The notes below the pieces were generated by a model. That model was given only the letters and a program-made list of their open reading frames with translations. It ran no database searches and had not been told where the DNA came from. This document shows positions 10,471 to 53,446 of a stretch of 54,817 bases of DNA, piece by piece. This DNA comes from Chara braunii (Eukaryota > Plantae > Charophyceae), in assembly GCA_003427395.1 (NCBI GenBank), contig BFEA01000009.1, positions 5,965,890 through 6,020,706 on the forward strand, given 5' to 3'. Position 1 is the first letter of the stretch, and each line of letters begins with the position of its first letter. Position numbers and translations under genes: made by a program.

Positions 10471-10505
<35 letters not shown>

Positions 10506-10669
10506 ATATAAGTCGAGTAATGTGTATAGTTCAATGTTCTAGAGGTAGATTCATTCAATTTTGCTTATCCCCTTGATAGAACTCAGCCCGTTCGTCTAAA
10601 CGAACGGACAACCAAATAAGCCCCACGAACCGAAGAGGACGGGAGTCACCCAAATTTCACCGGTCGGCA

Positions 10670-13131: not shown

Positions 13132-13768
13132 ACGAAAAGGGAAGGAACAAAATCTAAGCGAAATATTTTTAAAAAAATCGAAAGAAATCTAAAAAAGAAA
13201 TTATGAAAGAAAAACTAAAAACTTACCTTCAGGATGGAAACGGTCGTCCGTGAAACGGACGCTTGCTGTCTTTCATAGGAACTCTAAGTCCCCGTTAGTT
13301 GTCAAAGTGTCATCTGACGCTCTGCGTTCTAGTTTTTTTTTTTTTTTTTTTTTTTGGGGGGGGGGGGGTCCTGTTGGCTTAAACCACTAGTACCTCTGCC
13401 AGTGTTGGAAAATTACGATATACTGGTCTATCCCCGAAGTTAGCGGGGATCCGAGCAAGGTCGGCAAGTATTCCCAACACGGGAAAAAAAAAAGTTGTTT
13501 ATTATTTTTTGTCGTGGCGGTTTTTTGAGAGGTTTGGACCCGTGTTCGTTCCCCGATAGTGGCCGTGTAGTGGAAACGCTACCGGTCCTGTTTGGGAGGC
13601 TCATGGGGTCGCAGGTCGGTCGGTCCTCGGTGGGCGGATGTCCGTTCGGCCCACGAATCTTCACGACCGTTTTTGGGGGCGACCGACGCCGACTTTTGTG
13701 GTCCCCGTCTAGGCCTCTCGTCCGGCTGCCATCGCATCTCTCCCCCCCCCCTCTCTCTCTCTCTCTCT

Positions 13769-13937
13769 CCTTGGTTGATCCATCGACAGTAGGCGAGGAA
13801 AACCCTCGTTCGTCGGGATATCGCGGTGAGTCACTCTCTCTCTCTCTCTCTCTCCCTCTCTCTCACTCTTCCTCTCTCCTTGGTTGATTCGTCGACAGTA
13901 GGTGAGGAAAAACCTCGTTCGTCGGGATATCGCGGTG

Positions 13938-13941
<4 letters not shown>
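13769..13941 (+). repeat. Two direct copies of a ~64-bp unit separated by (CT)n
   Basis: CCTTGGTTGAT..TCGACAGTAGG.GAGGAAAA.CCTCGTTCGTCGGGATATCGCGGTGAGTC at 13769 and 13878. Confidence 0.8.
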
Positions 13942-13969
<28 letters not shown>

Positions 13970-13973
<4 letters not shown>

Positions 13974-14097
13974 CTGACTACCCCTAATTTCTCCCAACTG
14001 GTCGGATGAAAGCGCCGGCTGATTCCTCCTTAGACAAGTTTTCTACAGGTCAATTTCCCGGTATTAGGGCGACCGACTGGCCCTCGGTCGCCCGATA
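13970..14097 (-). repeat. Remnant of 3' LTR (first 128 bp)
   Basis: Matches 33416-33543 with two differences by eye (CCGGCT/CCGGCC and GATA/GACA). It ends at a (CT)n tract. Confidence 0.9.
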
Positions 14098-14579
14098 AAC
14101 AAGCACTGACCTCCTCTCGACGCCCCCGTCGAGCCCGCTCCGCTAAGATTAGACGAAACGTACCAGGTTTAAGTGGACCACTCGCGCTCTACGCAAGTGC
14201 CTCCTCTTGTCTGTCTGCCGTCTGGTTTTCTCAGGAACTCGGGGGCTGAGAGGGTGCTTCTTCCCTCTCTTATGTCGCGGTCATTCGGATTTTGGTGCCG
14301 GAGTAACCCTTTGCTTCTTTCTCCGTAGGGGAGCTCGTGCGACAGCTGTGTCCCCCTTTCTGATGCGGACTTTCCTCTTAGGCCTTTGTAGAACAAAAAC
14401 CCATTTTCTTTTCTTACCTAGCGTTAGGCCCTTCACTTTCCTGGTTTCTACTCTCTTCCTCTTCCTTGAACTCTCACCTATGTCGAACCGTCTTGGTGGT
14501 CCTTCGTCCACTATCTTAACTTTACCCTTTCCTTTAGGATTTAACGGTCTTAGCGCAGGAGTGGGGTCTCCCTTGACGT

Positions 14580-14730
14580 AAACAACTTCAGTCTAGCTTC
14601 TGCCACATGATCTTTCCACTTTGACCCATCTAGCTCAGCGATCATGTAAGCTCCCCAGCTTAACACACCAACTACACGATAGGGTCCCATCTATCTGTTA
14701 GCTAGTTTTCCGGTCCATATTCTTTCCAAG
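14580..14730 (-). pseudogene. Integrase C-terminal GPY/F remnant
   Basis: Minus-strand translation gives ERIWTGKLANR*MGPYRVV, then a frameshift, then WGAYMIAELDGSKWKDHVAEARLK. Confidence 0.75.
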
Positions 14731-15080
14731 GCGCGTTCTTCGCCCCTGAAATCCTCTCTACAGTATAGTCATAAAGTCGAATCCTGATCAGCCATCGTGC
14801 GATCGTAGGATCCGTCAGACTAAAGTCCTTCTGTAGGACTGAAGCTACGGCTGTAAGGTCTACCCTAAGAACGAATCGTCTCCCGTATATGTAATGCCTA
14901 AAGGTATCTAAGCACCGTAGAACAACCAACACCTCCTTCTTAAACTGACTGTAGTTTCGTTCTGCAGTGTTGAGTGTTCGACTCTCGAACCTCAATAGCC
15001 TCTCTTTGCCTTCGACATCCTTTTGAGAGAGCAATCCCCCAACCGAACATGGTCCAGCATCCGTAGATACTATGAACGGT
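14731..15080 (-). pseudogene. Gypsy RNase H domain
   Basis: FIVSTDAG, RFESRTLNTAERNYSQFKKE, YIYGRRFVLRVD and ARWLIRIRLYDYTVERISGAKN. Confidence 0.9.
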
Positions 15081-16250
15081 CAGGCTGTTTCGTCCTCAAA
15101 GAATGGCACACCCAGAATTTTTCCGCCTTCCTTAAATTCTTCCTTGAGGGACCGCACTGCTAACTCTTGAGGAGAATCCCAGTAGAACTTCTCAGTCTTT
15201 CTAAGAAGTGTGCGCAGAGGTTCCGCCTTTTCCGCATATCCTCGTATAAAAATCCGCCAATAACCAACAACCCCTAAAAACTGGCGAACTTCAGTTGCGC
15301 TGTGCAATGGAGTCGGCCAATTCAACAACTTCTCCAGCTTCCCAGAGTCGGGTCGTCGACCTTTCGCATCGCATATAAACCCTAAAATTTTAATCGTCAA
15401 TACGGCCCATCGACGCTTTGTCCTGCTAACCATCAGGTTAGCATCATCTAGCTGTTCCAAAACAGCGTAAATGTCCGTCAGGTGTTGCTCTACGAACCTC
15501 CTGACGCCAGGAGCGACTTCCATCTCATCTTTCAACACCGGCCCTTTTATCGGAAAGTCGTCGAGGAAAACCTCTACTTTATCAGGGATAAAGTCTTTCA
15601 GAACCGCTACCATGGCTCTCTGAAAAACTGCTACTCCATTGGTCCATCCCATCGGAACCACCATCATCTGCACTAATCCGAGCGGCGTGTGACTGCTACT
15701 CCATTGGTCCATCCCATCGGAACCACCATCATCTGCACTAATCCGAGCGGCGTGTGCATGGCTGTGAGATGCCTATCTCTCGGATCTAATGGTATCTCGT
15801 CATATCCTGAAAATAAATCGCAGACAAAATAAATCGATCTGCCTGCCGCTTCTTCTGCTAGCAGATCAGCGTGCGGTACCGAGCCTACATCCCGAATCGT
15901 CACAGCGTTGACCTTCTGAAGGTCTTGAATCCACTGAATCTTTGCGTTAGGTTTCCTTAAGAAGAACCATCTGTTTGCATAAGCGTTGTCACAAGGCTCA
16001 GCTACGTGTGACGCCATCTTCTCTTTGAGAAAGGAGATCACCTCTTCCTTCTCTTTCTGAGCAAACTTCCACCCTGCATCATTCCACGGCGTATGCGGAA
16101 TCGTGTAGATTATTGCCGGCTTAGCATACCTAGGATCAATCCTTCCTCTCTCCGCGTCACTAAACGCTATGGCTTTGTCGCAAGACCTAAGGACTTTCAA
16201 CACTCGCTCTTTTTCCGGTTCAATCAGATTCCCATCGCCTATGTTCATCT
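15080..16250 (-). pseudogene. Gypsy reverse transcriptase + connection domain
   Basis: IQDLQKVN, CDLFSGYDEI, PMGWTNG, VFLDDF (YxDD equivalent) and EVRQFLGVVGYWRIFI. Frameshifted by a 65-bp duplication. Confidence 0.95.
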
Positions 16251-16649
16251 CCTCTATCCTCTTTTCTGTCAGCCATTGCGGCTCCTTCCTCTTCTTCTCT
16301 TTAATCTCTCTAGCGATCTCTTCTTCAGATACTCCATCATACGCGGATCGCTCTCGTGCTACAGCCGCCAGCTTAACCTTCTGGGCTACTGTCTTGTGTC
16401 TCTTTGGTCGCCCCCCGTAGGGGGCTGTGCCCTTAAAAAAGACACAGATATCATCCCTCCGAATTCCTTATTTTCCGCCTTAGGATAGGCGTTTCTCCCT
16501 ACACGTACGCGAGTCCCTAAATCCTCAACTTCGACTATACGACCTTCTTTTTCTGTAAGTAGGTGCCCATACTTCTTTTCGCGAAAGCTCAGGGACTGAC
16601 TCGCAAGGGGAACTGGTATGCGGCCCTTTTTAGCGAGAACCGCTCTGTT

Positions 16650-17050
16650 CCTCGGGTCACGAGGCTCTACCGTCTCCATCATAATCCGCCCACCGTCTGG
16701 GCGCTTGATGGAAAGCATCTGGCTTCCATCCAGTCGTTCTATAGTAACGGCATGGACGTGACTCAGCCATGTCCGCCCCAATAATAACTCTGCGCTGCAA
16801 TCTCGAACCGCGAAAACAGGCATCGTCACTCTCAGGCGTTCGACCTCAATTGCAGCCTTGTGGCAAACCCCGGTGACCTTTTGCTTTCTTCCATCGACGG
16901 TCTCTATCTCAAATTTGAATTACTTATTAAGATCTAATCCCAATCGGATAGCCAGACCCTCATCGATGATAACAGCCTCGCTGCCGTTATCAATTATTGC
17001 ATGAAGAACTATTTCGTCATTGAGGGTACTCTGTATTGTCCCGCTGCCCA
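16650..17050 (-). pseudogene. Retropepsin aspartic protease
   Basis: AIIDNGSEAVII catalytic motif at ~16990, and downstream ELLLGRTWL. Confidence 0.85.
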
Positions 17051-17599
17051 GGATATAAAACTTGTCAGGGGGCACCCCTTCTATCCTATCTAAGAACACC
17101 GTCGCTGCACGATCCGCCTTGGCGACCACACTTGATACAGCAACAGTGGGTATCTCCTCCTGTTTGGTCGCCATTTGGACCTCGTCGCTCAGGGGAATAC
17201 GTGTCTTACGTGTAATCATGTGCAATTCATCCCGTGTCGGCCTCGAGGCCGCTAAATACTCTAGGATCGTGCACTGCATAGGCTGCCTGAGAGCGCATCT
17301 AAAAGGTTCGACCGTGTCTATGTCATCCAGAGTACTCTTCATCGTGAACTTTCTCGCCCCACGTTTGCATGGGGAAACTATAACTTCTTTTCCTTCAATC
17401 CTTTGTCCATCCTTCTCTGCCATTACGTAATCAGTGTCAGCCTTCTTGGAGGAGGAAGCCCTGGCGGACTTGGTCGCTGCCACCCGTATGGGCGTCATAG
17501 GACTCTCCTCATCCGAAGACAGACTCAGTCTCACGCTTTGGGTTCTCGCAACCCCTTTACCCTTGTTCGGTACTACTCGTCTAGCTTCCACATTCACCT

Positions 17600-19486
17600 T
17601 CATTGAAAGAAACATCGATACATCGTCGAGGTTATCCGCCCACTTGACGTACTTGCGATCATCAAGTACAACAAGCCCCTCATCTATTGCCCGTTTGACA
17701 TCAGGGCAATCTTTCTTGAGGTGATAATCTCCCCTGCAATAGATACAGGAGTTCCTAGGGGTAGGGGGTCGTTCCTCCGCGGACCTAATCGTTGGTCGTC
17801 TCGCATCCTGGTTAGATGGCCCAGGAGATCTAGGGTAGTTTGGGGACTTGGGATACCCTGGCGACACGGGATATCCTCCCCTCTTATACTGCCCCCGTGA
17901 CTCTTCTCTACGATCACCTCTCCCTGTCCGCTCATAACCGCTTCGATACCCATCTCGGCGGTCCTTATCCGACTCCCATCGACCGCTGGAGCCCTCTCTA
18001 TCCCTCGAGTTAAAGTTGCTCGGGCTTCGGTACCCCTTGGCATTTCCACCGTATCTGGGACTGCGAGGGTACTGGTCTCCGGGACTGCGCGGATACTGGT
18101 CGGCTCTGTCTCCTCGACTGTAAGAATCTCCCCCTCGGTACCCATCACGCTAGCGGTCTCTGTCTATGGTATCATCCCGACGCCTCCTCTCTTCGTCCTC
18201 TCTACGTCTCCGATCGTCTTCTTCTCTGCGCCTTCGATCCTCTTCATCCCTACGTCTACGATCATCCTCGTCTCTATGCCGGCGCTCATCCTCATCTCTT
18301 TCCCTCGCGTGATAGTCGGCCAGTGTACGGGGGTTATGGTCTTCGACGCTTCTCCATGGGACAGTATTGCGGCGATCCCATCGTAAGAAATAAGGTGACC
18401 CGGGTTTATCCCAGTATGTAGTTCCGACCTTCGTTTCAAAATTTGCCAATTGCCTTGTCATTGCCTTCATCTTCTCTTGCATCTCTTCTATGATAGCATC
18501 ATTATCCTTTGACCGTAGGGGTCCATCTCTATCCATCATATAACGTCGCTCTGACCAAGGTTTGTCATTGAAATCTGGGCACCTGTCGGTCCCGTATTCC
18601 CGATAGAGGGAAAAATCCCGGCGTTGCATGCCTTTCCAGAGTAAGTCCTTGTAGTCATCTGCCTCAGCCTTCATGGCCAACTTGAGCAATGCAGTGAATT
18701 CTAGCTTATCGTGAGGCGTCTCTCTCAGCACTGCCCGAAGGCGCAGAAACTTTCGCCCTCTCCTTGGGTTAGCTGCTCCAAGTCCCGGATAGAATACTTA
18801 ACATCTTCTAGTTTGTAGAGTTCGTACAGATTGACTTTATAAGTAGCCCATCACCTATCTTTAGGCCGAGCGTCTTTAATCTCTTGACTCAAGCTTGGGT
18901 TCACATTAAATAAGAAGTTGTCTATAATCTCATCCTCTGTCCACTAACTTCGGTATGCGTGCAACTCCCCCTTTTCGATATATTCGGTGATACCACACCC
19001 TTTGAAAACAGGTGGTCTGGTATCCAACTCTGAGGGCTGATGCGAGATGATGACTCTGTCCCTCGCCTCATATGGCAGAGGGTGCGATTCCCCTGTCTCG
19101 GGATAAAAAACCCGTCTGCCCATGGCATCTCTCTCTCTATCTCTCCAAAGCTGCTCTCTAATAAACTGTTCCCTCCAGTCTTCTCCTCCCAGGTAGGCCC
19201 TCTCTTCTCTACGCTCGTACATAGATGAGCGTTGAATAAATGATTCACGCCGAAAACTTGGTGGTTCGGTCTGAATCTCAACCCGCTCTACCGGAGCTGC
19301 TCTGTTGGGCTCGGTGACGACAGCAGGTGCCATCACCTCGGGCTCGCCATCATCCGGTTGCTCTACGCACCTCAGTGGGGCGTTCTGTCGAAGACGCTCT
19401 TTGAGGTCTCACAGAGCCCGGTCCGGCGATGCTCGATACACCACCTGTTCCTCGTCTGGATGTTGCCCCATTGTATCAGATTCCAT
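17600..19486 (-). pseudogene. Gag (capsid-like region, R/D/E low-complexity tract, CCHC zinc knuckle)
   Basis: An ATG at 19486 is in frame with ORF 18944-19336 (RPPVFKGCGITEYI). CIYCRGDYHLKKDC zinc knuckle at ~17706-17747. Several premature stops. Confidence 0.8.
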
Positions 19487-22632: not shown

Positions 22633-25600
22633 TAGCTATGCCCAAACAGGTATCTCAGGTCCTCCAGCCCGATGAACTTGTCTTCTGCGCGTCTTCGACA
22701 ATAGTGAATCAAATCTGCAGGTTTTAGGCAGTCTATCCAGGAGGTAGCATCTAACAAGTCTCTCTCGATCTCCTTACCATGAGGTCCCCACCTTACGCAA
22801 ATTGAGTAATATGCTTCTAGGAATTGACGCTCTAGTCCCCGTAAGAACGCGTGCTGAGTGTGGTCGGCCGCTTTCGTCAACCAGTCCACGCCTCTGTAAG
22901 TTTGTTCTATAACAAACTCAGGTAACACCATCCGCCAGCTCCCTAGAGGATGGTAAATCTGTGGAGGAGAACCGATCACAATTCTCGTGGTAAAAGGCCT
23001 ACTTCCAACGGCGCTAAGCAGTTGTCTTCTCACTATTGTCTCTGCTAAAATCTCATATTTCCACCAGATCCTGCTAACGCCTACAAGGGTCAGGCCTATC
23101 TCTATATCTTTCTCCTTATCAAACACAAGATATCCTATACCCTTCACCTGCCGGGGAGACCCCTGGTCCTCCGTAATCACTGTCCACAAGAAGACCCCTC
23201 TCGCCAGCCAAGTACCGAAATGTCGGATCGGCACCCAATTTCCTACCTCTAAGCGCACCGGAAGCGGAACGTTATACCCCAGCGCTGTCTCTCTTGGCCC
23301 TATGAAATCTATCTCTCTACGAGCCTCTGACCCTCGTGTCACTATATACGTCACCCATATGTCCCAATCGCTCCTCATTACCGCATGTCGCTCAACCCTT
23401 GCCACTCCAATTCTCTCCGACACACTCGATCTTACGACACCACTACCTTCTCAGACAACTCTACCGGTTAGGCTCAAGACAATCGAGTAGGTGTTGTGCA
23501 CTCTCCCGACAGCTCCATGGAAGTATATGGTAAACTCGACATATCTCTGGCCTCTCCGTATCTCCAGAGCGTGCTCGATCATAAGTCCGGCGCGCAACGT
23601 CATCCATCGCCTCTTCTTCCCAGCCGCCTGTCTTATCTCGTCGTAAGGAGAGAGTCACTCTCAGTGTGTCCCTGTCTGCCATCCCTACCTGTCCTTTGTC
23701 TAAAGTTTGTCCCCGTGTTTACTAACCGACCTCCCTTTACTCCCCTCTCTAAGCTAGACCCGGATATACCCTGCTTCTAGCTGTCTCGCGCATCAGGCAT
23801 ATCCTCATCTCCGTCCTCGTCTAACCTCCGTCCCCATGGGATATCCTCCTGTCCCTCGGCCTGAAGGAGGTGTCCCCAGCCGTCCTCCTGCAGCGCCTCT
23901 CCACCTATCTGCTCCCGACGATCCTCTGTCACCAGCTCTCCCCAGCCCTGGTCCTGCTCTCCCCAAGGCTCTATCTCTCCAACAGTCTCCCACTCTCTAT
24001 CGTCAGCGTACCAGCCGAGCTCCTTCCTATCTGGATATATACTCTGGTAATGCTCCTCCAACTCCCAGATAGAGATGAGGGGAGTGGGTTTGTCACTGGG
24101 AGTCTCACTAAAGAGCCGTCCGACTCCCTCCAAGCTATCTACAGGTCTCTGGACCTCCCTCTCCAAGGCTAGCCAGAACTCTAAGGGCTGATGGGGGTAG
24201 AAGGAGTCCTGGTCTCCTGTGGGCGCTAGAGCTCGTATGAACTCTATAAGCTGAAGTCCTCTCTCCCCTATGAGCGGCCCTCCGATAAACTGAGCGTACT
24301 CAACCCAATCCTGGTCAGCCAGTCCTCTCCTGAATCCACCTAACTCAATACTGGCTGAATACGTCTCTGCAATGTGACTGAGGCCCCAGAGTTCCTCTAC
24401 CACAAATACAGGGAGTCCCACCCTCACTCGTACCGAGGGGAGGGGAAAAACTCCCCCGATCTGGAGGGTCGTCCTCGACTCGCCGATCGGATCGTGCAGT
24501 CCCTCTCTATCTGCACGGAGGCTATCTACCATCTGAGATAGGATCAACCTAACCTCCAGCTCACAGGACCAGAAACCATGCACCAAACCCTCAAAATAGG
24601 TCGTGGCACTTACCGATCGTGAATAGTAAATATGTCCTACGACCTCTATGCTCGTAGTCCCAGGTGCCCGCCAGCGCTGAGCATCCTGCTGAAATGTCTC
24701 CACCGCATACACCCACAGGTGCACGTCCTGCCCCAACCGTATGGATCTCCAAGCCGAATGGAGCCAGGGCCCAGCCACGCTCCTCGCTGGCAGATCGAAC
24801 TCTACTACGTCGGGCTCCACTGTCTCAGGCGGTCTGGGCCATCTGGCACTGTCGATCGCGAGCTCCACTCTATCTGCCTCCTCTACCATCGAATTTCCTA
24901 TAGCTACTGGTTGTCGTCAATCACAGCCTCTCTCGGTAGCCACCACTAGCTCTCCTCATCCGGACACCACCTCCTAGGTCCGGACGGCGACTCCTATCCT
25001 GGGGAAGTGAGCGTCGGTGGCGTCGATCTCCTCGTCGTCAGTCTCCCCCTCCGAGTCGACCCAGTCTGGCTTCCAAGTGCCCTCGTCGTCCTCACGCTCC
25101 CACCCCTCGTCGTCGAACTCGTCCTCGACGCGGTATGGTGGAAGACCTATGGACTGGTAATAATCTGTCAACTGATACTCAGGTATCAGTGTCCTAAACT
25201 CGTCACTCCACCAGCTCCACCAGTCATCCAAAAGAGGAGGCCTATGCACGTAACGCTCTCGGGTCCCGCTCGGAGTTCCCGGTCCAGCAAATCCCAAGTG
25301 TAAGAAGGAATTCCCCACAGGGGATCCTCGTCTGGCGCAATCGAACGGATCAGCTCCACGAGCTGGATCCTCTCGTCACCCCAACGAGGTCCGGCTGTTA
25401 CTAAGGAATAGTAGATGCAATGGGTGTCAAACTCGTCTCTCGAAAGACGCTCGAGCTCCCTAACCTCAAGATAAACCTCTACTATACCTCCTATCCCGCC
25501 GAAGACGGAGTCCACCACGAACGCTGGTACGATCGTCCTCAACCAAGTCCCTGCGTGCGGGAAGAACCCGTCGTCCGCTACAACAAGCTCTCCGTTAATG

Positions 25601-33543: not shown

Positions 33544-34558
33544 GCGCTTTTACTGACTCATCAAAAGGTTGATCCCCGACAGTGTGTCCGGGATGTTAAT
33601 ATCTGATGGATAAGGACTCACCACATCGCCCCAAGTAAGCGACAACCGTGAGAAAAGTGGTCGACTTTACTCACACAAACCATGCAATCCTTGCAGANNN
33701 NNNNNNNNNNNNNNNNNNNNNNNNNNNNNNNNNNNNNNNNNNNNNNNNNNNNNNNNNNNNNNNNNNNNNNNNNNNNNNNNNNNNNNNNNNNNNNNNNNNN
33801 NNNNNNNNNNNNNNNNNNNNNNNNNNNNNNNNNNNNNNNNNNNNNNNNNNNNNNNNNNNNNNNNNNNNNNNNNNNNNNNNNNNNNNNNNNNNNNNNNNNN
33901 NNNNNNNNNNNNNNNNNNNNNNNNNNNNNNNNNNNNNNNNNNNNNNNNNNNNNNNNNNNNNNNNNNNNNNNNNNNNNNNNNNNNNNNNNNNNNNNNNNNN
34001 NNNNNNNNNNNNNNNNNNNNNNNNNNNNNNNNNNNNNNNNNNNNNNNNNNNNNNNNNNNNNNNNNNNNNNNNNNNNNNNNNNNNNNNNNNNNNNNNNNNN
34101 NNNNNNNNNNNNNNNNNNNNNNNNNNNNNNNNNNNNNNNNNNNNNNNNNNNNNNNNNNNNNNNNNNNNNNNNNNNNNNNNNNNNNNNNNNNNNNNNNNNN
34201 NNNNNNNNNNNNNNNNNNNNNNNNNNNNNNNNNNNNNNNNNNNNNNNNNNNNNNNNNNNNNNNNNNNNNNNNNNNNNNNNNNNNNNNNNNNNNNNNNNNN
34301 NNNNNNNNNNNNNNNNNNNNNNNNNNNNNNNNNNNNNNNNNNNNNNNNNNNNNNNNNNNNNNNNNNNNNNNNNNNNNTTTCCTCGGACGTTCATCGACGC
34401 ATCAGGAGGTTGAACCCCGACAGTCTGCCGATGATGCATTTGACTGATGGATAAGGACTCACCACATCGCCCAGAGTTAGCGATACCCTTGAGAAAAGTG
34501 GTCGACTTTACTCACACCAACCTTGCTGTCCTAACAGAATGTGTGCATGTATGTATGT

Positions 34559-34602
<44 letters not shown>

Positions 34603-34786
34603 TTTTGGGCGATGTGGTGTGAGTGAAGTCGACCGTTCTCAGGGGGTTCGCCAACTCTGGGCGATGTGGTGAGTCCTTATCCATCAGTCAAATGCGTCCT
34701 GGGCAAACAGTCAGGGTTCGACCTCCAAATGAGTCAATGGAAGTCAGACGAAACAGTCTCGTAAAGTCATGCTTTTTTTTTTTTTC

Positions 34787-34818
<32 letters not shown>

Positions 34819-34923
34819 GGTATCGCTAGCTCTGGGCGATATGCATCTTGGGCAGATTGTCGGGGTTCAATCTCCTGATGAGTCCGGTAAAAGTCCGACG
34901 AAACAGTCTGGTACAGTCATGCT
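33544..34923. mobile_element. Cluster of ~170-nt hammerhead-containing repeats (retrozyme-like): two minus-strand and two plus-strand copies
   Basis: Shared body GTGTGAGTAAAGTCGACC...GGGCGATGTGGTGAGTCCTTATCCATCAG followed by a hammerhead motif. Copies at 33544-33697(-), 34378-34538(-), 34607-34772(+) and 34818-34923(+, internally deleted body). Confidence 0.8.
34853..34910 (+). ncRNA. Type III hammerhead ribozyme, intact catalytic core
   Basis: Stem III CAGAUUGU/ACAGUCUG; GUC cleavage triplet (C34861); stem I GGGG-UUCAA-UCUC; CUGAUGA; stem II GUC(C)GG-UAAAAGU-CCGAC; GAAAC. Confidence 0.85.
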
Positions 34924-35424
34924 TTGTTTTTTTTTGTTTAGCGAATATGACACCATACACACACACACTGCCTTTTACATTATAATGCAACTGTTGACGT
35001 CAGCAGACAACGAAGCACTTGAAGATGTCAGCGATTCCAGTGCAGGGAAACCAATTCGAGGTACTTGCCCTCATATCATCATCATCATCATCATCATCCT
35101 CTCTCTCGCTCTCGATTCTCAAAAGTTATGCCTGAGGCTGGACTTGTGGCCGGAAGCATCAAGTGGACCGAAGGAGGCCGTGCCTCAGTTGCAGGGGATG
35201 AGAGTCGTTCGGTTGGGCTTTCCAAATGAGTGTGGGTAAGGCGCTGCGACTCTTGCACAGGGCCTGCATTTCATGAAAGACATAAAAAACCGTGGAAAAA
35301 CCTTTGCTGCATTGGCCCAGGTTCCCTCTTGGGAGTTGTTTGCCACCAGGCCTGAATATTATTTCTCACATGTCTGAATGTTGATTCATTGACCCTGTGT
35401 GTTTTGAACCCCTGACCCGTGTTT

Positions 35425-36173
35425 TGGTTGACAGATTGATTTATTGAAGTATCGATTGATTGATTGATCGATTGATTGATTTATCGATTCATTGGTTGAT
35501 CAATTGGTTGATTTATCGATTGATTGGTTGATTTATTGATTGATTGGTTGACAGGATGGTTGATAGATTGATTGATTGATTTATCAAATGATTGATTGAC
35601 TGAGTGATTGATTGATTGAAAGTCCGACTGATTGATTCACTGATTGGCCGATTGAATGACTGACAGATTCATCGATCGACCGACAGTTTGAATCGATCGA
35701 CTAACAAATAGACTAATTGATAGATTGATTGAGTAATTCACTGACTGACGAACTGACTTATTGATTGATTGATTGACTAACTTATCGATGGACTGACCGA
35801 TTGGTCGATTGAGTGACTGACTGATTCAATGATCGACCAACTGATTGACTGATTGATTGCTGGATTGATCAGTTGATTATTTTGTCGATTAATAGGTTCG
35901 TCAATTGATTGGTCGATTGAGTGACTTACTGATTCATTGATCGACCAACTGATTGAATGATTGAATGATTGAATGATTGAATGGTTGAATGATTGAATGA
36001 TTGAATGATTGAAGGATTGAATGATTGAATGATTGAATGATCGAATGATCGAATGATTGAATGACTGATCGATTGGTCGATTGACTGACTGACTGATTCA
36101 TTGATCGACTGAACGATGGAATGATTGAATGACCAACTTACTGACTAATTGATCGATTGAATGATTGATTGAC

Positions 36174-36233
<60 letters not shown>

Positions 36234-36553
36234 CGATTAATTTGTTGATTGATTGATTGACTGATCGACCGAATTGGTTGTTTGATCCATTGGTCGATTG
36301 ATTGACTTACTTGTTCATTGATCGGCTGACTGATTGGATCGATGGACTGACTTATTGATTCATTGATTGACGAACTAATTAAATGATTGATTGATTGAAT
36401 TATTGAATGACTGAATGATTGAACGATCGAATGATTGAATAATTAAATGACCGACTGACTGATTCGGTAAATTGATTGACTGGATCATTAACTGATCTAT
36501 TGATCGATTGACTTATTCATGGATTGATTGATTGATTGATTGATTCATTGACA

Positions 36554-36608
<55 letters not shown>

Positions 36609-36825
36609 CAATTGGTCGATTGAGTGACTCACTTATTCATTGAATGACTTAATGACTTAATGATTGAATGATTGAATGATTGAATAATTGAATGACCGAC
36701 TTAATGATTCGATAGATCGATTGACTGAATCATTGACTGATTTAATGATCAATGGATTAATTGATTGATTGAATGATTGATTGAATGATTGATTGATTGA
36801 TTGATTGATTAATTAATTAATTGAC

Positions 36826-36874
<49 letters not shown>

Positions 36875-36962
36875 AGTTGGTTGATAGATTGATTGACTGA
36901 TCGATTGGTCAATTGAGTGACTCATTGATTCATTGATCGACCGAATAATTGATAGATTGATG

Positions 36963-37023
<61 letters not shown>

Positions 37024-38549
37024 GTTGGTTGGTTGGTTGATAGATTGATTGGTTGATTGGTTGATTGGTGGATTGATTGATTGACTGAGTGATTCATTGA
37101 TCGAAAGACCGACTAATTGATCGATGAACTGACTGATTGGGTCGATGGACTGAATGGCTGATTCATTGATTGACAAACTAATTGAATGATTGATTGATTG
37201 AATAACAGACTGGGTGATTCAGTACATCGATTGACTGACTGATTGACTAACTGATTAATAAATTCATTCATTTTAATTTTCATTGTTGTCGATTGATGAA
37301 CTGATGTTTTCAACCCTGACCTGTGTTTTGGATGCTGAATGTTGTATATGACGGGTGTGTGTAGTTGTCGGCTGCTGCACCGTACAACTGTCGAGTATGG
37401 GTTGACCGATTAACTGATTGATTGACAAACTGATAGATAGATTGATTAATTAATTGATTGATTCATTGATTATTCAGATTTATTGATTGTATGATAGTTC
37501 AACTGATTGATTGACAAAGTGATAGACTGATGCATTGATATATCGACTGAATGACTGTGTTTCATCGTTGTTGGGTCCTGAACCGTAAAAGTGTCGTATA
37601 TGGACTGACTGATTGACTATTTGAATAACTAACTTAATGATAGATTGATTGATTCATTGATTGATTCATGGATTGATTGATTGTTTGATTGTTTGACTGA
37701 TTGATTGACAGACTAATAGACTACTAGAATGATTGAATAACATATTGACTAATTGACATAATGATTGACTGATTGATATATTGAAACAGTGACCGAGTGA
37801 GTGATTGACTGATTGGAGGACTGATTGACTCACTGGTCTTGGCAGTTGAATGTTGTCTGTCACGGGTCTGTGTAGTTGTCGGGTCCTGATCCGTGTAGTT
37901 GTAGAGTATAAACTAAGTGACTGACTGATTGATTGACTGATTGACTGGTCGATTGACTGACCGATTGACTGACCGATTGACTGATCGATGGACTGACTGA
38001 TTGATCGATGGACTGACCGATTGATTGTTTGACTGATTGATTTACAGACAAATAGATTGATTGATTTTTATATTGACTGACTGACTGACTGATTGACTCA
38101 TTTAATGATTGTTACACTAACTGCGTGATTGATTGATTGATTGATGGATTGACTAATCGCTTAGTCAATCACAAGGCTGATTGATTGACTAATTGAGTGA
38201 TTCATTGATTGACGGACTGATTGAATTATCGACTGGATGATAGACTGATTGATTGATTGATTGACCGATGGACTGACTAACTAACTGACCGATTGACTGA
38301 TTGATCGACAGTTTGATCGATGGACCGATTGATTGCTCAATTCACTGACTGGCAGATTCATTAATCGACCGAATGATTGAATGATTGACTGATTATTAGA
38401 TTGATTGATTGACTGATTGATCAATTGATTGATGGACCGACTGATTGCTCGAATCACTGACTGACTGATTCATTGATCGACCGAATGATTGAATGATTGA
38501 CTAATTGATAGATTGATTGATTTCTTGACCCTGTATGTTTTGAAACCTT

Positions 38550-38616
<67 letters not shown>

Positions 38617-38770
38617 GACCTATGTTTTGGTATAGAGGTTGATGGACTGACACACTGACAGAGTTATTGAATGATCGATTGACGGACCGATCGATTGGAT
38701 TGTTGGCTGTCGAGATCGGTTGCAGATCGATTGATTGATTGATCGGTCAAGACTGTGGAGTGATTGATTG
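35425..38770. repeat. Degenerate (GATT/GACT)n tetranucleotide satellite, ~3.3 kb
   Basis: Continuous TGAT/TGAC units with (TGAATGAT)n sub-arrays and recurrent longer blocks such as ATTGGTCGATTGAGTGACT. Confidence 0.95.
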
Positions 38771-38788
38771 GTCAATTTAGAAATTTGG

Positions 38789-38851
<63 letters not shown>

Positions 38852-38977
38852 CTGAGTGTCGCGACGATGGATGTCAAATTCAACGTCATAGTTGTCGTTT
38901 CGATGTTGAACATGACATCCATGACAACGACAACAGAATTATATACACGATTACAACGTAACTATAAACGACCACCT

Positions 38978-39038
<61 letters not shown>

Positions 39039-39204
39039 GAGAGAGAGGGAGAGAGAGAGAGAGAGAAAGAGAGAGAGTGAGAGAGAGAGAGAGTGAGAGA
39101 GAGAGAGAGAGATTGTACCATGCACTTTGCACAATCAATCGGCGGGAAGACATAATGTCATCTGCTACGTCGTTTTGTTGAACACAGCGGGCATGGATAA
39201 GACA

Positions 39205-39283
<79 letters not shown>

Positions 39284-39290
39284 ACAATCG
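38550..39290. repeat. Cluster of (CA)n and (GA)n microsatellites
   Basis: Long pure dinucleotide runs at ~38551, 38792, 38983 and 39207. Confidence 0.95.
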
Positions 39291-42263
39291 GAGGTCGGAA
39301 CGCGATGGCGGCAATGGCAAACGTCGTCGTCCGTCCGTCGGTTAAGGTGCGGACAACCACCTCCCTCCAATCCACGCTACCGGTCACCGGTGAACTGACA
39401 TGTCCCTCGGAGGGGGGAAAATATCTTAAAAAAAAAAAAAAAAAAAAAAAAGGCCACGGAACATGACACCAACCACAGGGAACCCGCCCAAACGTGTGTC
39501 CGTTCGTTGGACCGTACCGGAGGATGAATAGGCCACAAGTGGAAATGTAACCTTTTCCAAAAATGAAAAAAACAAAAGTCAAATTCGAAAGTACCGCGGG
39601 ACACAGGCTCGGCAAATTCGGCGCGCACTGTAATTCAGGGTCAGCAAAAAACGGCTCGAAGGTACTGGTGGCTTAAAGCCAACGACCACGTCCACATGCA
39701 TGGCTTTCAAGCCCCCCTCAAAAAAATGCAGAGTTCGATCCCTCTGGGGATCGAAAAAAAAAATGGAACTATTTCTCGATTTATGCGTGTCATCCTTGCG
39801 CATACTAGTCTACAGATCCGCACGGAGAATTTTAGTCGCGCGATCTTTGAAATTTGACCGCGCTGGATCTGTTCAGACCCTTAGGGCTGCTTCCCAAAAG
39901 GAGCTAACACCAATAGGGTACCGTCGAGCTCGAGTCCAGCGCCACTTGGTGATAGCTTGATGCTGTAACCTACCGGGCTAGTTCGTTTTCATGTAAGCTA
40001 AACTCGCAACTCTTCTATTTAAAAAGTTGTTGCCCAGTAGGTCACCCAACTTTGGGACTCGACGGCCCCAATCTGCCTCACCTAACCAAACGACCGTCAC
40101 CCCATCATCTAACCGGCTGGAGCTTAGCCCGGTAGGCCCGATAATTCACCCCTTTAGTCGCTAATCCGACTTCGGACCCTGGACGAAGTCAAATTTCACG
40201 GCGTGGAAAAACATAGGCCTCTTATTCCTCTCGAGTTGAAACCCCATATTTGGCGCGTCCCTCTTTTATATGCCTACTTAGGCCCTGAATCGCGCGACTG
40301 CCATTATTTTAAGTAGGATACGTTTAACTTTGACATTCTCATGCCTGCGCACTTTTGCGGCATCGACAAAAGTGAAGCACTAGCAGTTACTGTCGTTACT
40401 CTCAGACGCCACAAACGTTTTGACTAAGTTCAAAAAAATTGAGTCTCTCAATCATAGGTTAGGTATTAATAAACTCTTAGCAAACGTTAGTCTCACCAAG
40501 TCCTCAAATTCAACAAAAAGGTCAGATAGCGGTCGACATTGAAAAAGTCTGAGTAGATACCTTTGTAATGGTGTCTTCTTCGACACCGTTCGGGCCGAAC
40601 CTTTGGCTAGGGGGTCCCGAATGTTTGAGTATTCGGGTTTGGGCGTTCAACCGAAACTGAACGCCGACTACCTTGGCAAAAACAATAAGCTCATGGTTGT
40701 TCAAATAAAACAACAATAACTATTGTTAAAAAAATGCGAATAGTAACACAAAAAATGCAGTTCCAACAACAATAATAACGGATGTTGCAACAACAACTTT
40801 TTCACTAACAATTGCAGCAAAATCCGACTTATTAGTTTACTCGTGTAACAATTGCAACACCAACAACAACATTATGGTCTCTCGTACAACATAATATGTC
40901 AATAAGGGAACAACAAAATCTAAGGTTGCGGAAAGAAACGAAGGAGTTACTCGCAAAATCATTGTAAAAAGAGAAAGAACAACTTAGGTTGAAGCAAGGA
41001 AGATATGGATTGGGATGACGGTGGAAATGAGGACGATCGGATGAGTTCCACCCATCCGAGTCGGGAATCTGGTAATGGGTTGGGGAAGGATCGTGATATC
41101 CAGAATCCGTGTTTAAGGAGAGGTAGAGAGACGAAGAACAACATGGACGACCAATAATGATTTAGGAAGAAGTTGAAAAAAAAATGGTAACGGGTCGAAG
41201 GGAAATGAGACTTTAAAGAATTAATAAGGAAACATACAAGTGAAATAAATAACATAGGTTAGTTATGAATTAGAAAAAAAGTAACATACATATGAAGAAG
41301 ATTACCAGTTGGCTATTCATAAGCAAACTATCCCCAAAAGGGACCTTGCTCTAAGACAACATACCCTCGATGCATTGGGAGAGAATTATAAGGAGGATTA
41401 TTAGTAAGTATGAATAAGTAATCAACTAATTTCACAAATGAGAAAAAAATACATTTAAGTCGAGAGAAGTTTCATACTAACGGACAAAAAACGAAGACTA
41501 TATATATAAAATCCCTGACTGTCTTCTTCATGAAGGAGACCAGTAGAACAAAGGCAATAAAAAAACAAACAATGAGAGTCGAAACCGTATTCTCTTACAC
41601 CCTTCCGGTTGGGCCTATTGCTTGAACTAACTTAGGAACAATCAACAAGCTTGAAACATCACAAGACAGATAAAGAAAAAAAAAAAAAATCCTAAGAAGG
41701 AATAAGAAAGGAAAGCATGAAATTTGAGGAAGCGCATAATGACAATAATTGTTTAAAAAAATAATAATAATAACGAGAAGATGAACTATTTTCGTCTCTA
41801 CATTCGACACATAAGTATTATCTTTCAAAAACAGTCACCCAAGAGACAATGGATTATATGACTTATTCAAAAGGTTGTGCATTACTCAAATTATGAGATG
41901 CTCCAAGTACAGGAGTAATATCGCTGGAGACTTGGAAGGATGGAAAAAAACTAGAGCAATTATTTCCAAGCCTAAGGGACTCGTCGGAGCAACAAGACAA
42001 AAGATGAACGAATCAAGGGGCTTTGATGGTAATATATTTAAAGCTTCAACTGAAAGGAATATGAAAAGTTAATGACAAACCACTCATCACTAACATGCCT
42101 AACACTAAAGTTATTTTAGAGACAACCACAAACAAAATAATCCTTATTCGGTAATCATCGTATATGCAGCTTTTAGCTTCAATTATGATTGTGGGCGATG
42201 CAAATGATGAGCGAGATGATGTCACTCACCTCATTAGTTTTGAGGATAATATTACGTAAATAG

Positions 42264-44269
42264 TTAGGCTACCAAAGTGGCCCGGAACCAATTTCTCAGT
42301 CAGGCCAAAACAAATATACAAATAAAATTATTCTTTATTTATAGGCTACCAACTGGGTCGCCCGTGTCATCCTATTTTTTCGGACGGCTTGACCGTGCAA
42401 AGACCAGGGAAGGTCCGGGAGATAGTTAACAACTGACACTATTTACAGGTCACTTTCAGCGGCTTAAGGTCCCCATCTAATGGCTGGATGGAGGTACTTG
42501 AAACCCCTTTCATAAGCTTCAGCCACTTCAGCGGTTTCAGGTCCCCACCTGAAAGTCCTGAAATGACCTGAAGTGGTCGAAGCTTCTGAAAGGGGTTTTA
42601 GGTACCCCCATCCAAATGGGGGCAACCGAAACCCCTTTCAAAAGCTTCAGCCACTTCAACGGTTTCAGGTCCCCACTTGCAATTCCTGAAATGACCTGAA
42701 GTGGCTGAAGCTTCTGAAAGGGGTTTCAGGTACCCCCATCCAACCATTTGAATAGGGGTATCTGAAACCCCAAAAGCTTCACCCACTTCAGCGGTTTCAG
42801 GTCCCCATCTGAAATTCCTGAAATGACATGAAGTGGCCGAAGCTTCTGAAAGGGGTTTCAGGTACCCCCATCGAAATGGTTGGATGGGGGTACCCGAAAC
42901 TCCTTTCATAAGTTTTATCCACTTCAGCGGTTTCAGGTTTCCACCTGAAATTATTGAAATGACCTGAAGTGGTTGAAGCTTCCGAAAGGGGTTTCAGCTA
43001 CCCTCATCCAAATGGTTGGACGGGGGTACCCAAAACCCCTTTCAGAAGCTTCGGCCACTTCAGCGGTTTCAGGTCCCCACCTGAAATTCCTGAAATTCCT
43101 GAAATGCCTTGAAATGGCTGAAGCTTCCGAAAGGGGTTTCAGGTACCCCCATCCAAATGGTTGGATGGGGTACCAAAACCCCCCTTTCATAAGTTTCGGC
43201 CACTTCAACAGTTTCAGGTCCCTACCTGAAATTCCTGAAATGACCTGAAGTGGTTGAAGCTTCTGAAATGGGTTTCAGGTACCCCCATCCAAATGGTTGG
43301 TTGAATGGGGGTACCTGAAACCCCTTTCAGAAGCTTCAGCCACTTCAGCGGTTTCATGTCCCTACCTAAAATTCCTGAAATGACCTGAAGTGGTTGAAGC
43401 TTCTGAAAGAGGTTCCAGGTACCCCCATCCAACCATTTGGATATGGGTACCTGAAACCCCTTTCAGAAGCTTCAGCCACTTCAGGTCATTACGGCGGTTT
43501 CAGGTCCCTGGCTGAAATTTCTGAAATGGGCTGAAGTGGCTGAAAAAAGAGGCAGCAAAAAAAAAAAAACATAAAACTTGTCCTCCAAACCACCCGAAAC
43601 TTCTGAAATGACTTGAAGTTCCTTCAGGCCATTTCGGCGGTTTCATACCACTTCATAATTTTTTATTCTGAAATTTCACGTGGTCATTAACCATTAGTGG
43701 AAGATCATAGCAAAAAAAAAAAAAAACAATAAAAAAAATTTTAAAAATATATATTATGCAGAAAAATAAACTGAACAATTTTTGGCTCAGAGTTACATCA
43801 AAATTCTGTAGCAGATTTATAATACAAAATCAAGTTAAAACCTTATTTTTTTATTTTTTTATTGTTTTAATTTTATTTACTCTTTATTTATTTTTTGCTT
43901 GGCAAGACAACTTGAAGTGGCATCGGGTCACTCTGACAGCCTAGGTTTATCTTGTATTTGGTAAAAAGTTCGAAGTGACCATGCGGCAAACGTTGTTTAA
44001 TTTATTTTTTTGCATAACGTAAGTTTTTTTTTAATTTTTCTAGATTATGAGTCGGGCCGCGCGGGGCATCTTATTTTCCTGAACGGCCCGACCGTGTAAG
44101 GCCAAGGAAAGGTTATAGCAAAGCAAAAAAAAAAAAAAAAAAAAAATCTAAAAAATCTAAAAAAGAACTATGTTATGCAGAAAAATAAAATGAACAATTT
44201 CTGCCTCAGGGTCACATTGAAATTCTTTATTTAATTAAAATAAAATATATATATATATACTATTTGACG

Positions 44270-46279: not shown

Positions 46280-46285
46280 TATGAG

Positions 46286-46336
<51 letters not shown>

Positions 46337-46440
46337 CATGACCGTCTCTCTTCCTCTCTCTCCCTCTCGACAAAAAATATGGTGGTGTTTCTTCCCATGT
46401 TGTAGTCGTTCATTCATTCTCATTGTGCATATTATCCGTT

Positions 46441-46509
<69 letters not shown>

Positions 46510-47098
46510 CCCATGATTGTCGCTCTCCCTTTCTCTCTCTCGCTCTCAAAAAAAAATGTGGTGGTGTTTCTTCCCATGTTATAGCCGGTCATTCATTCTC
46601 ATTGTGCATACTATCTATTTATCCCTGATTCTCGCAGGTGGACGACATGCAAAATGAAAATGAATCTTTCGCTAAACATGGGAAGATCACCCTTATAAAA
46701 TGGTGATGTATTTTTCCATCTTCTAGCGGAAGATTGATTTTCATTTTGGATGTCGTCCACCTATTGGGATAGGGGATCAATGGACGACATATGAAACATA
46801 AATGAATCTTACGCAATAATATGAAAAGAAACACCTCTATATTTTTTATATACAACAGACAAAAAACATGAAGGTATATCTTCCCAGGTACTATAGGAAT
46901 ATTCATTTTCATTTTGCATGCCATCCACCTGCCGGGATTGATAATATGTGGACACAAAACGAGCAAAATGAGAACGGATCTTTTACTAAACCTTGGGAAG
47001 ATACACCGCTATATTTATTGTCTTTTGTTCATGTGGTGAGTAGTGGATCGAGATGCATGGGCATCGCCTTTTTTTTTCTTCTCCCTCTCTCTCTCCTT

Positions 47099-51081: not shown

Positions 51082-52664
51082 ATGGAGAACAAAGATAGCG
51101 AGAAGAAGAAGAAGAAAAGAGAGAAAGGTGAGGAAGGAGGAGGAGGAGCCGTTGTGGCTATGGATGTGGATGGGAGACAGGATGTGGCCGGTGTTATCGC
51201 GTCCATTCAGTCCGCTACCGAATTCTTCATCAAGCCTAGCCCGACCCCGACGCTCGACACGTCGAAATGGCCGATCTTGCTGAAGAATTACGACAAACTG
51301 AATGTCCGTACAGGTCATTACACCCCGATCCCGACGGGCCACTCTCCGCTGAAGAGGCCGCTGTACGACTATGTCCGCTATGGCGTTATCAATCTCGACA
51401 AGCCGGCCAATCCGTCTTCCCACGAGGTGGTGGCCTGGATCCGACGTATTCTGAGAGTAGACAAGACGGGACACAGCGGCACGCTCGATCCCAAGGTCAC
51501 TGGAAGCTTGGTCGTTTGCGTTGACCGAGCGACAAGGCTGGTCAAGGCTCAGCAAGGGGCGGGGAAGGAGTACGTATGCGTAGCCAGGCTGCACAGCGAA
51601 ATCGACGGCGTGCAGAAGGTAGCGAGAGCCATCGAGACCTTAACGGGAGCGCTGTTTCAGCGCCCACCGTTGATCTCCGCCGTCAAACGACAGCTCAGGA
51701 TCCGCACGATCTACCAGAGCAAGCTGCTGGAGTACGATCAAGCGCGGCACTTAGTCGTTTTCTGGGTGTCCTGTGAGGCGGGGACGTACATACGAACGCT
51801 CTGTGTGCATTTAGGTCTTCTGCTTGGCGTCGGCGGGCATATGCAGGAGCTCCGGCGCGTGAGAACGGGGATCTTAGGCGAAAATGACAACCTTGTGACT
51901 ATGCATGATATCCTGGATGCTCAATGGACGTACGACAACTATAAGGACGAATCCTATTTGAGAAGGGCAATTATGCCCCTTGAGGTGTTGCTGACAAGCT
52001 ATAAGCGCATTGTGGTGAAAGATAGTGCTGTGAACGCCATCTGTTATGGGGCTAAGCTCATGATTCCCGGCTTGTTGAGGTATGAGTCGGGCATAGAGGT
52101 AGGGGAGGAGGTTGTGATGATGACCACCAAGGGAGAGGCCGTCGCTTTGGGAATCGCCCAGATGACGACGGCGGTGATGGCCACGTGTGATCACGGGGTC
52201 GTGGCGAAGATCAAGCGCGTGGTGATGGAACGGGATACCTACCCGCGGCGATGGGGTCTGGGGCCGACGTCGATGAAGAAGAAGCAGATGATCTCGGAGG
52301 GGTTGTTGGACAAATACGGAAAGCCGAACGAGAAGACGCCGAAAGAATGGTTACGAAATGTTGTTGACGTCAGTTCTGTGCCAGTTGGCGGGCTGTCGGA
52401 ACTGGAGCGGATTGCCGCGGAGGCGGCGGGGGGAGGACACGTGGTGTCTCCGACGGCGGTGGTAGAGAAGGTTAAGGTCAAGGAAGAAGCAGACTATGAA
52501 ATGGGGGAGGGGAAGAAGGAGAAGAAGAAGAAGAAGAAGGAGGAGGAGGAGGAGGAGAATTGCCCGAAGATGGAGGACGAGGAAGACGGGGATAGAAAGA
52601 AGAAAAAGAAGGAAAAGAAACCAAAGGAGGAGGACGATGAAGTGGATGTTAGCGACGAGGAGGA

Positions 52665-52695
<31 letters not shown>

Positions 52696-52854
52696 AACAA
52701 GGGAGAAGAAGATGGACAAGAGGAGGCTCAGGAGAGGGAAGGAAAGCGGAAGAAGGATAGGGGATCGAGTCCCGCAGCCAGCGACGGAGAGACGGTTCAG
52801 CCAAAGAAGAAGAAAAAGAAGAAGACGAAGGGAGATCAGGAAGAGGAGGACTAG
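51082..52854 (+). CDS. CBF5: H/ACA snoRNP pseudouridine synthase (dyskerin/NAP57/Cbf5), 590 aa, single exon
   Basis: DKCLD region ([20 protein letters not shown]), [13 protein letters not shown], catalytic [26 protein letters not shown] domain ([19 protein letters not shown]) and a K/E-rich C-terminal tail. The ORF is uninterrupted. Confidence 0.98.
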
Positions 52855-53446
52855 TGGAGAGTAGTTGAACCGTCTTCAGATTTAGGGAGAGAGAGAGAGA
52901 GAGAGAGAGAGCGGGGGGGAAGGGGAGGGTTCAGTGGGAGGAAGATAGAGTTGGAAGCAAGCGACGGATGATGTCAAACTCCACCTTCCTCCCTCCTCCT
53001 TCCTCCTTCCACCTCCCTCCTCTCGTCTCGTAGCTGGGATAAATAGAAGAGGTAGCTGGTCGTGGCAAATCTGACATTTGCTGCGCGTGATTGCGGTCGT
53101 CCGCCGCCGCCGCCGCCGCCCGTCGCCGATGCCTAATCAAAGCGCGCCGAAGAGGGATGAGCTTTGTCCACGTCAGCAGCGTGATCGTCCGCCTACATGC
53201 AGGCATAGTAGGAGAACAAATACCAAATGACGAAGATTAGGTCGTGAACAACTAGCAGATCCTCAAGGTCTGAAGGCCTTAATTAACTGACGAAAAGCAG
53301 AAGAGACGGTGTAACAGAGGGTGGGAGAGAAGCAAAAAGAGTGGTGGGGTGTGTGATCTCTCGCATCAAGGGTTGCGCAGCTGGGAAGGGTGAGTTTTCT
53401 CATGCAGAGGAGGCTTTGTCATACTCGCCGGTGTTCGTTTCCGGTT

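Follow-up and report, generated by a model that had tools for sequence, protein, structure and literature searches.

The alga Chara braunii carries a short non-coding repeat of very high copy number that lands in (CA)n microsatellites and contains a type III hammerhead ribozyme motif. One copy of this repeat, here called copy B, retains the complete catalytic core of the motif. It lies in a stretch of 54,817 nucleotides of contig BFEA01000009.1 (assembly GCA_003427395.1), which was analysed as a whole and is referred to below as the window. The hammerhead of copy B is probably a relic in a decayed and silent copy of this very abundant retroelement, and the element itself most likely stems from a Chlamys-type Penelope-like element, either as its 3' module (the pseudo-LTR or tail region) or as a short derivative that is non-autonomous. 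An earlier sequence-only reading had proposed a genomic self-cleaving RNA in a probable algal genome. The genome is indeed algal; a dedicated gene for a self-cleaving RNA gives way to a decayed copy of a retroelement.

The hammerhead motif of copy B

The letters of the 58-nt motif are those quoted in the sequence-only reading. C3, U4, G5, A6, G8, A9, G12, A13, A14 and C17 are all canonical, as are the pairs A15.1-U16.1 and G10.1-C11.1, and both loops are present, with UCA (or UUCAA) as loop 1 and UAAAAGU as loop 2. In hammerheads, tertiary contacts between the two loops confer activity at low Mg2+. The claim that every conserved core nucleotide is in place thus holds for copy B, by its letters as well as by its alignment to the Rfam model Hammerhead_3. 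The three pairable stems with an open stem III were also described correctly, since helix III is open over 8 bp and helices I and II are capped by their loops. The word "intact" fits the core only. The helices are impaired, with two G.U pairs among the five of stem I and a bulge in stem II.

Assignment to type III is borne out by two descriptions of the motif. The Hammerhead_3 model (RF00008) aligns with copy B over its full length (model positions 1-54) at 36.1 bits, with an E value of 2.7e-6 in a search of 401 nt and of 3.7e-4 when the whole window is compared with all 4227 families. The score falls below the gathering score of 48.5 bits. For this reason a default Rfam scan of the window is blank, and the match appears under an E-value threshold. 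Our own strict type III descriptor (UH, helix I of at least 4 bp, CUGANGA, a helix II closed by G-C, GAAA, and helix III of at least 5 bp) finds copy B as its sole match in the window and finds nothing in 300 dinucleotide shuffles. The bare core pattern CTGATGA...GAAA occurs in the window at chance level (1 found, 1.74 expected), so it is the full descriptor and the covariance model that make the motif significant. On the strength of these two results, the motif is taken as real rather than a product of chance. Both the Rfam scan and the descriptor place it on one strand only of the window.

The minimum-free-energy (MFE) structure of the isolated motif is a three-way junction of -14.5 kcal/mol (z -1.0), in which stem I is shifted by one nucleotide and C3 is paired. 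The hammerhead fold proper reaches -11.7 kcal/mol, against that MFE of -14.5. A family-majority version was obtained by placing the majority letters of the reads described below into copy B by coordinate and refolding the result. Its hammerhead fold has -20.4 kcal/mol, near its MFE of -20.8, and the hammerhead fold of copy B is 8.7 kcal/mol weaker than that of the majority version. The thermodynamic z-scores (-1.0 and -0.6) speak neither for nor against a hammerhead motif.

Architecture of the locus

The hammerhead of copy B is part of a non-coding repeat of about 140-210 nt, four copies of which lie within 1.4 kb. Their coordinates, together with those of the motif and of the surrounding microsatellites, are given in Table 1.

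Table 1. Hammerhead motif of copy B, repeat copies and neighbouring sequences in the window (a dot marks features given without strand)
Feature	Position	Strand	Remarks
Type III hammerhead motif of copy B	34853-34910	+	58 nt
Helix III	34853-34860 with 34903-34910	+	8 bp, open, one G.U (34857/34906)
C17	34861	+	predicted cut between 34861 and 34862
Helix I hairpin	34862-34874	+	GGGGU/AUCUC, 5 bp including two G.U; loop UCA
Core CUGAUGA	34875-34881	+	
Helix II hairpin	34882-34899	+	GUC[C]GG/CCGAC, 3+2 bp, bulged C34885; loop UAAAAGU
GAA	34900-34902	+	
Copy B	34816-34954	+	core intact; from the alignment of the repeat copies
Copy A	34615-34785	+	core dead, CAAAUGA (U4A, G5A); stems II and III broken
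Copy C	34378-34533	-	core CUGAUGC (A9C), also C11.1G; 3' end lost in assembly gap
Copy D	33555-33697	-	core UUGAUGA (C3U); unrelated DNA replaces the sequence after loop 2
(TG)27	34540-34593	.	(CA)n on the strand of copy C; between the 5' ends of copies C and A
(CA)14.5	34787-34815	.	between copies A and B
Short (CA)n	34958-34968	.	3' of copy B
Assembly gap, 680 N	33698-34377	.	hides the 3' end of copy C and the 5' end of copy D

The cluster has the layout [D<-C](TG)n[A->B], tandem as well as inverted, and is embedded in (CA)n. Copies A and B form a direct tandem with a spacing of 150 nt. Copy C stands head-to-head with copy A across the (TG)27 tract, which is the microsatellite host of the insertions, and copy D shares the orientation of copy C, from which the assembly gap separates it. 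Every visible end of a copy adjoins (CA)n on the element's own strand. The hammerhead core is kept in one of the four copies, B, and the other three carry inactivating core changes.

Copy B is truncated at its 5' end and internally deleted. It starts directly 3' of (CA)14, and 26 nt present in copies A, C and D are missing between 34840 and 34841. Downstream of the hammerhead follow GGTACAGTCATGC, a T-rich run (34923-34939), the tail AGCGAATATGACACC (34940-34954) and then (CA)n up to 34968. The tail region of about 30 nt, made up of the T-rich run and AGCGAATATGACACC, is found in copy B only among the four copies; copy A lacks it and ends in GTCATGC followed by T13. The hammerhead lies about 45-100 nt from the 3' end of the element.

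Apart from the Gypsy element, whose reverse transcriptase (15080-16245) is the only one in the window, no open reading frame for a reverse transcriptase or a GIY-YIG endonuclease was detected in the 54,817 nt. Copy B can therefore be at most a truncated or non-autonomous copy. Comparison of the translated open frame of the repeat with a protein collection yielded six candidates, none of them significant.

Two other repeats lie close to the cluster. A separate fragment of very high copy number occupies 34984-35029, about 30 nt downstream of copy B; its summed contig depth in DNA is about 32,000, it is found in RNA too, and it has consistent flanks of its own in the loose ends of reads. Further downstream, 35434-39286 holds a degenerate array of about 3 kb derived from (GATT)n/(TGAT)n, with higher-order periods of 36 and 112 nt, followed by long (AC)32, (GA)28, (AG)65 and (AC)42 tracts.

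The family in public DNA reads

A 245-nt stretch of the window containing one repeat unit was used as a query against one DNA run, with a likeness of at least 80%. The family of copy B is hugely repeated in C. braunii. Summed over contigs, depth reaches 2,500-3,700 in the 5' half of the hammerhead, 44,000-78,000 in 34888-34923, and 10,000-18,000 in the tail of copy B into (CA)n. In the deepest part lie GAAA, GGTACAGTCATGC and the 3' strands of helices II and III. Part of the step in depth at 34885 is due to the extra C of copy B, which most relatives lack, so that they are clipped at this point. The ends cut off in this way read ...AGACTGTCGGGGTTCAACCTCCTGATGAGT, which means that the relatives carry the 5' half of the hammerhead as well. 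The tail is likewise common to the family, as loose ends behind 34929 and depth up to 34968 indicate, and the family's loose ends run into (CA)n.

The majority letters of the reads restore the helices that are weakened in copy B. A majority C at 34857 turns the G.U of helix III into C-G, another at 34871 turns a G.U of helix I into G-C, and the absence of the bulged C34885 leaves a clean helix II of 5 bp. The loop and flank positions 34889, 34912 and 34926 differ too. In all, copy B departs from the majority at about six positions over about 88 nt and is a mildly decayed copy of the family.

Among the minor read variants, G34863A and A34870G are compatible with pairing, and G34862A (4%) and the rare G34865T break a pair. 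C34884T (15%) and G34897A (12%) concern the partners 10.3 and 11.3. In the RNA reads C34884T is confined to one read-orientation class, in which G34897A is over-represented too. This points to a compensatory change from C-G to U-A in one subfamily. None of the variants listed, from which 39 weaker ones are excluded, reaches 5% in CUGAUGA, GAAA or C17, among matches conditioned on likeness to copy B, so that this conservation of the core is partly forced by the 80% threshold.

These observations also bear on the idea that the motif resembles a hammerhead by chance or convergence and is, for instance, part of a tRNA-derived Pol III SINE (its T-arm/B-box region) with a T-run as terminator. Stem I (GGGGTTCAA[T/C]CTCC) does resemble a tRNA T-arm/B box, a T13 run lies 3' of copy A, and the z-scores are unremarkable. 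Such a look-alike is nonetheless extremely improbable given the whole-window E value and the shuffles, all 300 of which fail to match; the majority letters moreover strengthen the helices of a hammerhead, and the family has a conserved tail beyond the T-run that a Pol III transcript would lack. A tRNA-derived SINE was also sought directly and rejected, as the repeat has no tRNA-like head, ARAGORN predicts 0 genes, and Rfam finds no tRNA in 34600-35000 even at an E value of 10.

Expression and cleavage

RNA of the family is present in three oligo-dT RNA-seq runs, with 452, 1128 and 700 matching reads in samples of 6-13% of each run. Reads at least 99% like the locus of copy B number 0, 3 and 1, respectively, and copy B is therefore essentially silent. 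No pile of read starts occurs at 34862 in the three runs; the depth there (15-40) comes from relatives, and oligo-dT libraries are ill-suited to ribozyme ends. No joints between units were seen in the RNA reads, for which the query held one unit only. A pile of read ends in one orientation is found at 34871, 10 nt 3' of the predicted cut (9 of 39, 16 of 74 and 7 of 34 in the three runs). The mismatch T34871C between copy B and the family probably creates this pile as an alignment edge.

The intact core nucleotides of copy B, its three helices that can still form, and the fact that its two transitions away from the family letters leave G.U pairs might suggest a working, locus-specific ribozyme, which would process a local transcript and be either domesticated or still active. 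The near absence of its own reads and of a start pile at 34862 makes this very unlikely, as does its setting, with no gene nearby and with flanks made of microsatellites and other repeats. Energetically, the hammerhead fold falls short of the majority version by the margin given above, and folding favours the shifted stem I, in which C3 is sequestered. The core could also have been preserved by chance: about six differences over about 88 nt, with about 14 essential positions, would leave a clean core in about one-third of copies, and one in four is observed here.

The DNA loose-end consensus (AGACTGTC before GGGG) and all four copies in the window read through the cleavage site, so the RNA templates of the (CA)n subfamily were mostly uncut or religated. 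Another pattern is seen in a sister hammerhead family at L007:1240-2860 (BFEA01000024.1), where at least eight truncated copies in both orientations lie in (TA)n. Directly behind the microsatellite, two of them open with GGGTTCAGCC and GTTCAGCC. These starts fall 1-3 nt into helix I, where the 3' product of self-cleavage would begin, and they lend indirect support to cleavage in vivo.

The sister family was met in 213 kb of further C. braunii DNA (L006-L014), reached via eight paralogues of an accessory open reading frame of the Gypsy element and via dyskerin. Of the repeats considered here, these 213 kb hold only the (TA)n stack of the sister family (L007) and one 3' fragment (L012); they contain no autonomous copy of the element and no hammerhead at the gathering score.

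Affiliation of the element

Hammerheads in the Penelope-like elements of Chara are already published. Craig et al. (2021) described Penelope-like elements of the Chlamys clade in C. braunii, at very high copy number and genome-wide (PMC8557442). Two of the three Chara types have canonical hammerheads (Chlamys-2_cBra and the PLE-X type), one of them a "3'-HHR" (PMC8557442). Penelope-like elements are further characterised by 5' truncation, by partial tandems that form pseudo-LTRs, by an adjacent inverted and 5'-truncated copy, and by a tail of 30-40 bp at one end only, to which the Chlamys elements add a bias for insertion into (CA)n (PMC8557442).

These traits are all visible at the locus, and the element is for this reason read as a Penelope-like 3' module or derivative. 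The partial direct tandems and the adjacent inverted, 5'-truncated copy appear as [D<-C](TG)27[A->B], and the (CA)n bias is seen both in the ends of the copies and in the loose ends of the family in reads. The resemblance to the Chlamys-2_cBra and PLE-X elements, judged by their description, extends to the species, the canonical hammerhead near the 3' end, the genome-wide high copy number, the 5' truncation, the partial tandem with an inverted copy, the short one-sided tail and the (CA)n bias. Unlike those elements, the locus has no open reading frame for RT/GIY-YIG or for a gag-like protein, and its copies measure only 140-210 nt. We infer the Penelope-like parentage of the family from this architecture and from the literature.

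The ribozyme of active source copies would act on tandem or read-through transcripts, cutting them after C17. The cut would leave the RNA with a defined 5' end, ahead of its target-primed reverse transcription into a microsatellite, and a short derivative would be mobilised by the reverse transcriptase of Chlamys-type Penelope-like elements. Here we infer both cleavage in vivo in the source copies and the role of the cut. At the locus of copy B itself, likely nothing happens; its core would have survived by chance, with weakened helices and no expression.

Alternatively, the family could be a non-LTR retrozyme, whose tandem units are cut, ligated to small circular RNAs and copied by whatever reverse transcriptase is available, from a LINE or a Gypsy element; it would then have no particular link to Penelope-like elements. 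Its short units (150-nt spacing from A to B) arranged as direct tandems without an open reading frame would fit, as would the genomic copies that read through the cut site, as if from a religated circle or a multimer, the RNA of the family in three runs, and the like size range of metazoan non-LTR retrozymes (PMC7761336). We regard this alternative as unlikely. The arrays here comprise two units only, one of them dead, the RNA shows no joints (with one unit as the query), and integration of the Penelope-like kind would fit the head-to-head inversion, the (CA)n bias and the tail at one end only. An affiliation with retrozymes of the metazoan type, whose type I hammerheads lie in multi-copy head-to-tail arrays that give rise to circular RNA, is set aside because the hammerhead has type III topology and the arrays here have two units. 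The alternative may even collapse into the Penelope-like reading, as a 2026 preprint proposes that animal non-LTR retrozymes derive from Penelope pseudo-LTRs (10.64898/2026.07.22.740005). A combined version, in which the short type III elements of Chara are true non-LTR retrozymes that form small circular RNAs and are mobilised by the reverse transcriptase of Chlamys Penelope-like elements, is conceivable and is given a low probability.

Comparison with other hammerhead elements

The Penelope-like reading leaves the topology of the ribozyme as a point of difference. Canonical Penelope-like hammerheads are minimal type I motifs without a stable helix III (PMC6155905), whereas the family of copy B has a full type III motif. 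Type III topology is otherwise tied to the LTR retrozymes of flowering plants and to circular RNAs that infect plants (PMC7761336). With plant LTR retrozymes the Chara repeat shares this topology, its non-coding and non-autonomous nature and a streptophyte host (PMC4918200, PMC7761336). Those elements, known from flowering plants, have LTRs of about 350 bp that each carry a hammerhead, a PBS and a PPT, a non-coding core of 600-1000 nt, a 4-bp TSD, a circular RNA of 600-1000 nt, and mobilisation by Gypsy; the Chara units, in contrast, are inserted into microsatellites. A plant LTR retrozyme is ruled out at the locus, where LTRs, PBS and PPT are absent, the units measure 140-210 nt at a spacing of 150 nt, and the flanks are (CA)n.

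Metazoan non-LTR retrozymes and the hammerheads of Penelope pseudo-LTRs resemble the Chara repeat as non-coding tandem units of 150-300 nt without LTR, PBS or PPT (PMC7229834). Both have hammerheads of type I, often minimal motifs in which a weak helix III acts as a dimer, whereas that of Chara is a type III motif competent as a monomer, with a helix III of 8 bp. Viroid-like RNAs are autonomous circular replicons with hammerheads in both polarities and are not encoded in host DNA. Avsunviroidae or a viroid-like satellite RNA as the source of the motif are ruled out by its presence in a nuclear assembly and, at very high copy number, in DNA runs, with one hammerhead polarity.

Among the short retroelements, Sm-alpha of Schistosoma is a non-autonomous SINE-like element of high copy number with a type I hammerhead and a tRNA-like Pol III promoter. 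The Chara repeat is likewise a short, high-copy hammerhead retroelement; unlike Sm-alpha, no tRNA-like head was detected in it.

A pattern scan of metagenomes produced five contigs with hammerheads, all of them unrelated to the Chara element. Type III hammerheads occur there in JAEIGA010125117 (L003:1230-1264), JAEIGA010265262 (L004:2073-2107) and JAEIGA010052218 (L005:1121-1155 and 2024-2082), in each case 50-100 nt upstream of successive long open reading frames (235-673 aa) with no Pfam match. The one at L005:2024-2082 is above the Rfam gathering score, and the other three come from the pattern scan only. The layout recalls the ribozyme-led open reading frames recently described from RNA viruses (PMC13725137).

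Other features of the window and of the further DNA

The giant Gypsy element in the window has a 369-aa accessory open reading frame (23777-24886, minus strand). Eight C. braunii paralogues share 52-59% identity and have no Pfam domains; for most of them, a gag-aspartic-protease gene follows 2.4-4.8 kb downstream. An intronless gene for the dyskerin/CBF5 pseudouridine synthase of 590 aa (51082-52854, plus strand; DKCLD, TruB_N, TruB_C_2 and PUA domains) is annotated identically in GCA_003427395.1.

Several fragments of structural RNAs are scattered over the sequences. A U6 snRNA-like fragment at 39758-39803 (minus strand) scores 29.9 bits, under the gathering score of 44; a full U6 of 85 bits, at L014:1491-1588, has a further copy of the giant Gypsy family next to it. 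Outside rDNA, large-subunit rRNA is represented by 39 nt at 9987-10025 (minus strand; model positions 2764-2802, 23.6 bits) and 268 nt at L009:812-1079 (minus strand; model positions 675-954, 66.7 bits, above gathering). Long hairpins at 42502-43431, 46281-46562 and 52861-53025 match plant miRNA precursors on both strands, well under the gathering scores, and look like remnants of inverted-repeat transposons rather than miRNA genes.

Significance

The locus of copy B itself is a relic of very little significance. The interest lies in its family, which combines a complete, monomer-type (type III) hammerhead with very high copy number and a microsatellite-targeting retroelement of Penelope-like style, in a streptophyte alga close to the land plants. 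Where land-plant LTR retrozymes and viroid-like RNAs acquired their type III hammerheads is still open (PMC7761336). Should cleavage and circularisation prove true in Chara, the family would bear on the origin of the hammerheads of plant retrozymes and viroids. If the Chara elements are true non-LTR retrozymes mobilised by the reverse transcriptase of Chlamys elements, they would connect, in evolutionary terms, the hammerheads associated with Penelope elements to the type III motifs of LTR retrozymes in land plants and of viroid-like RNAs.
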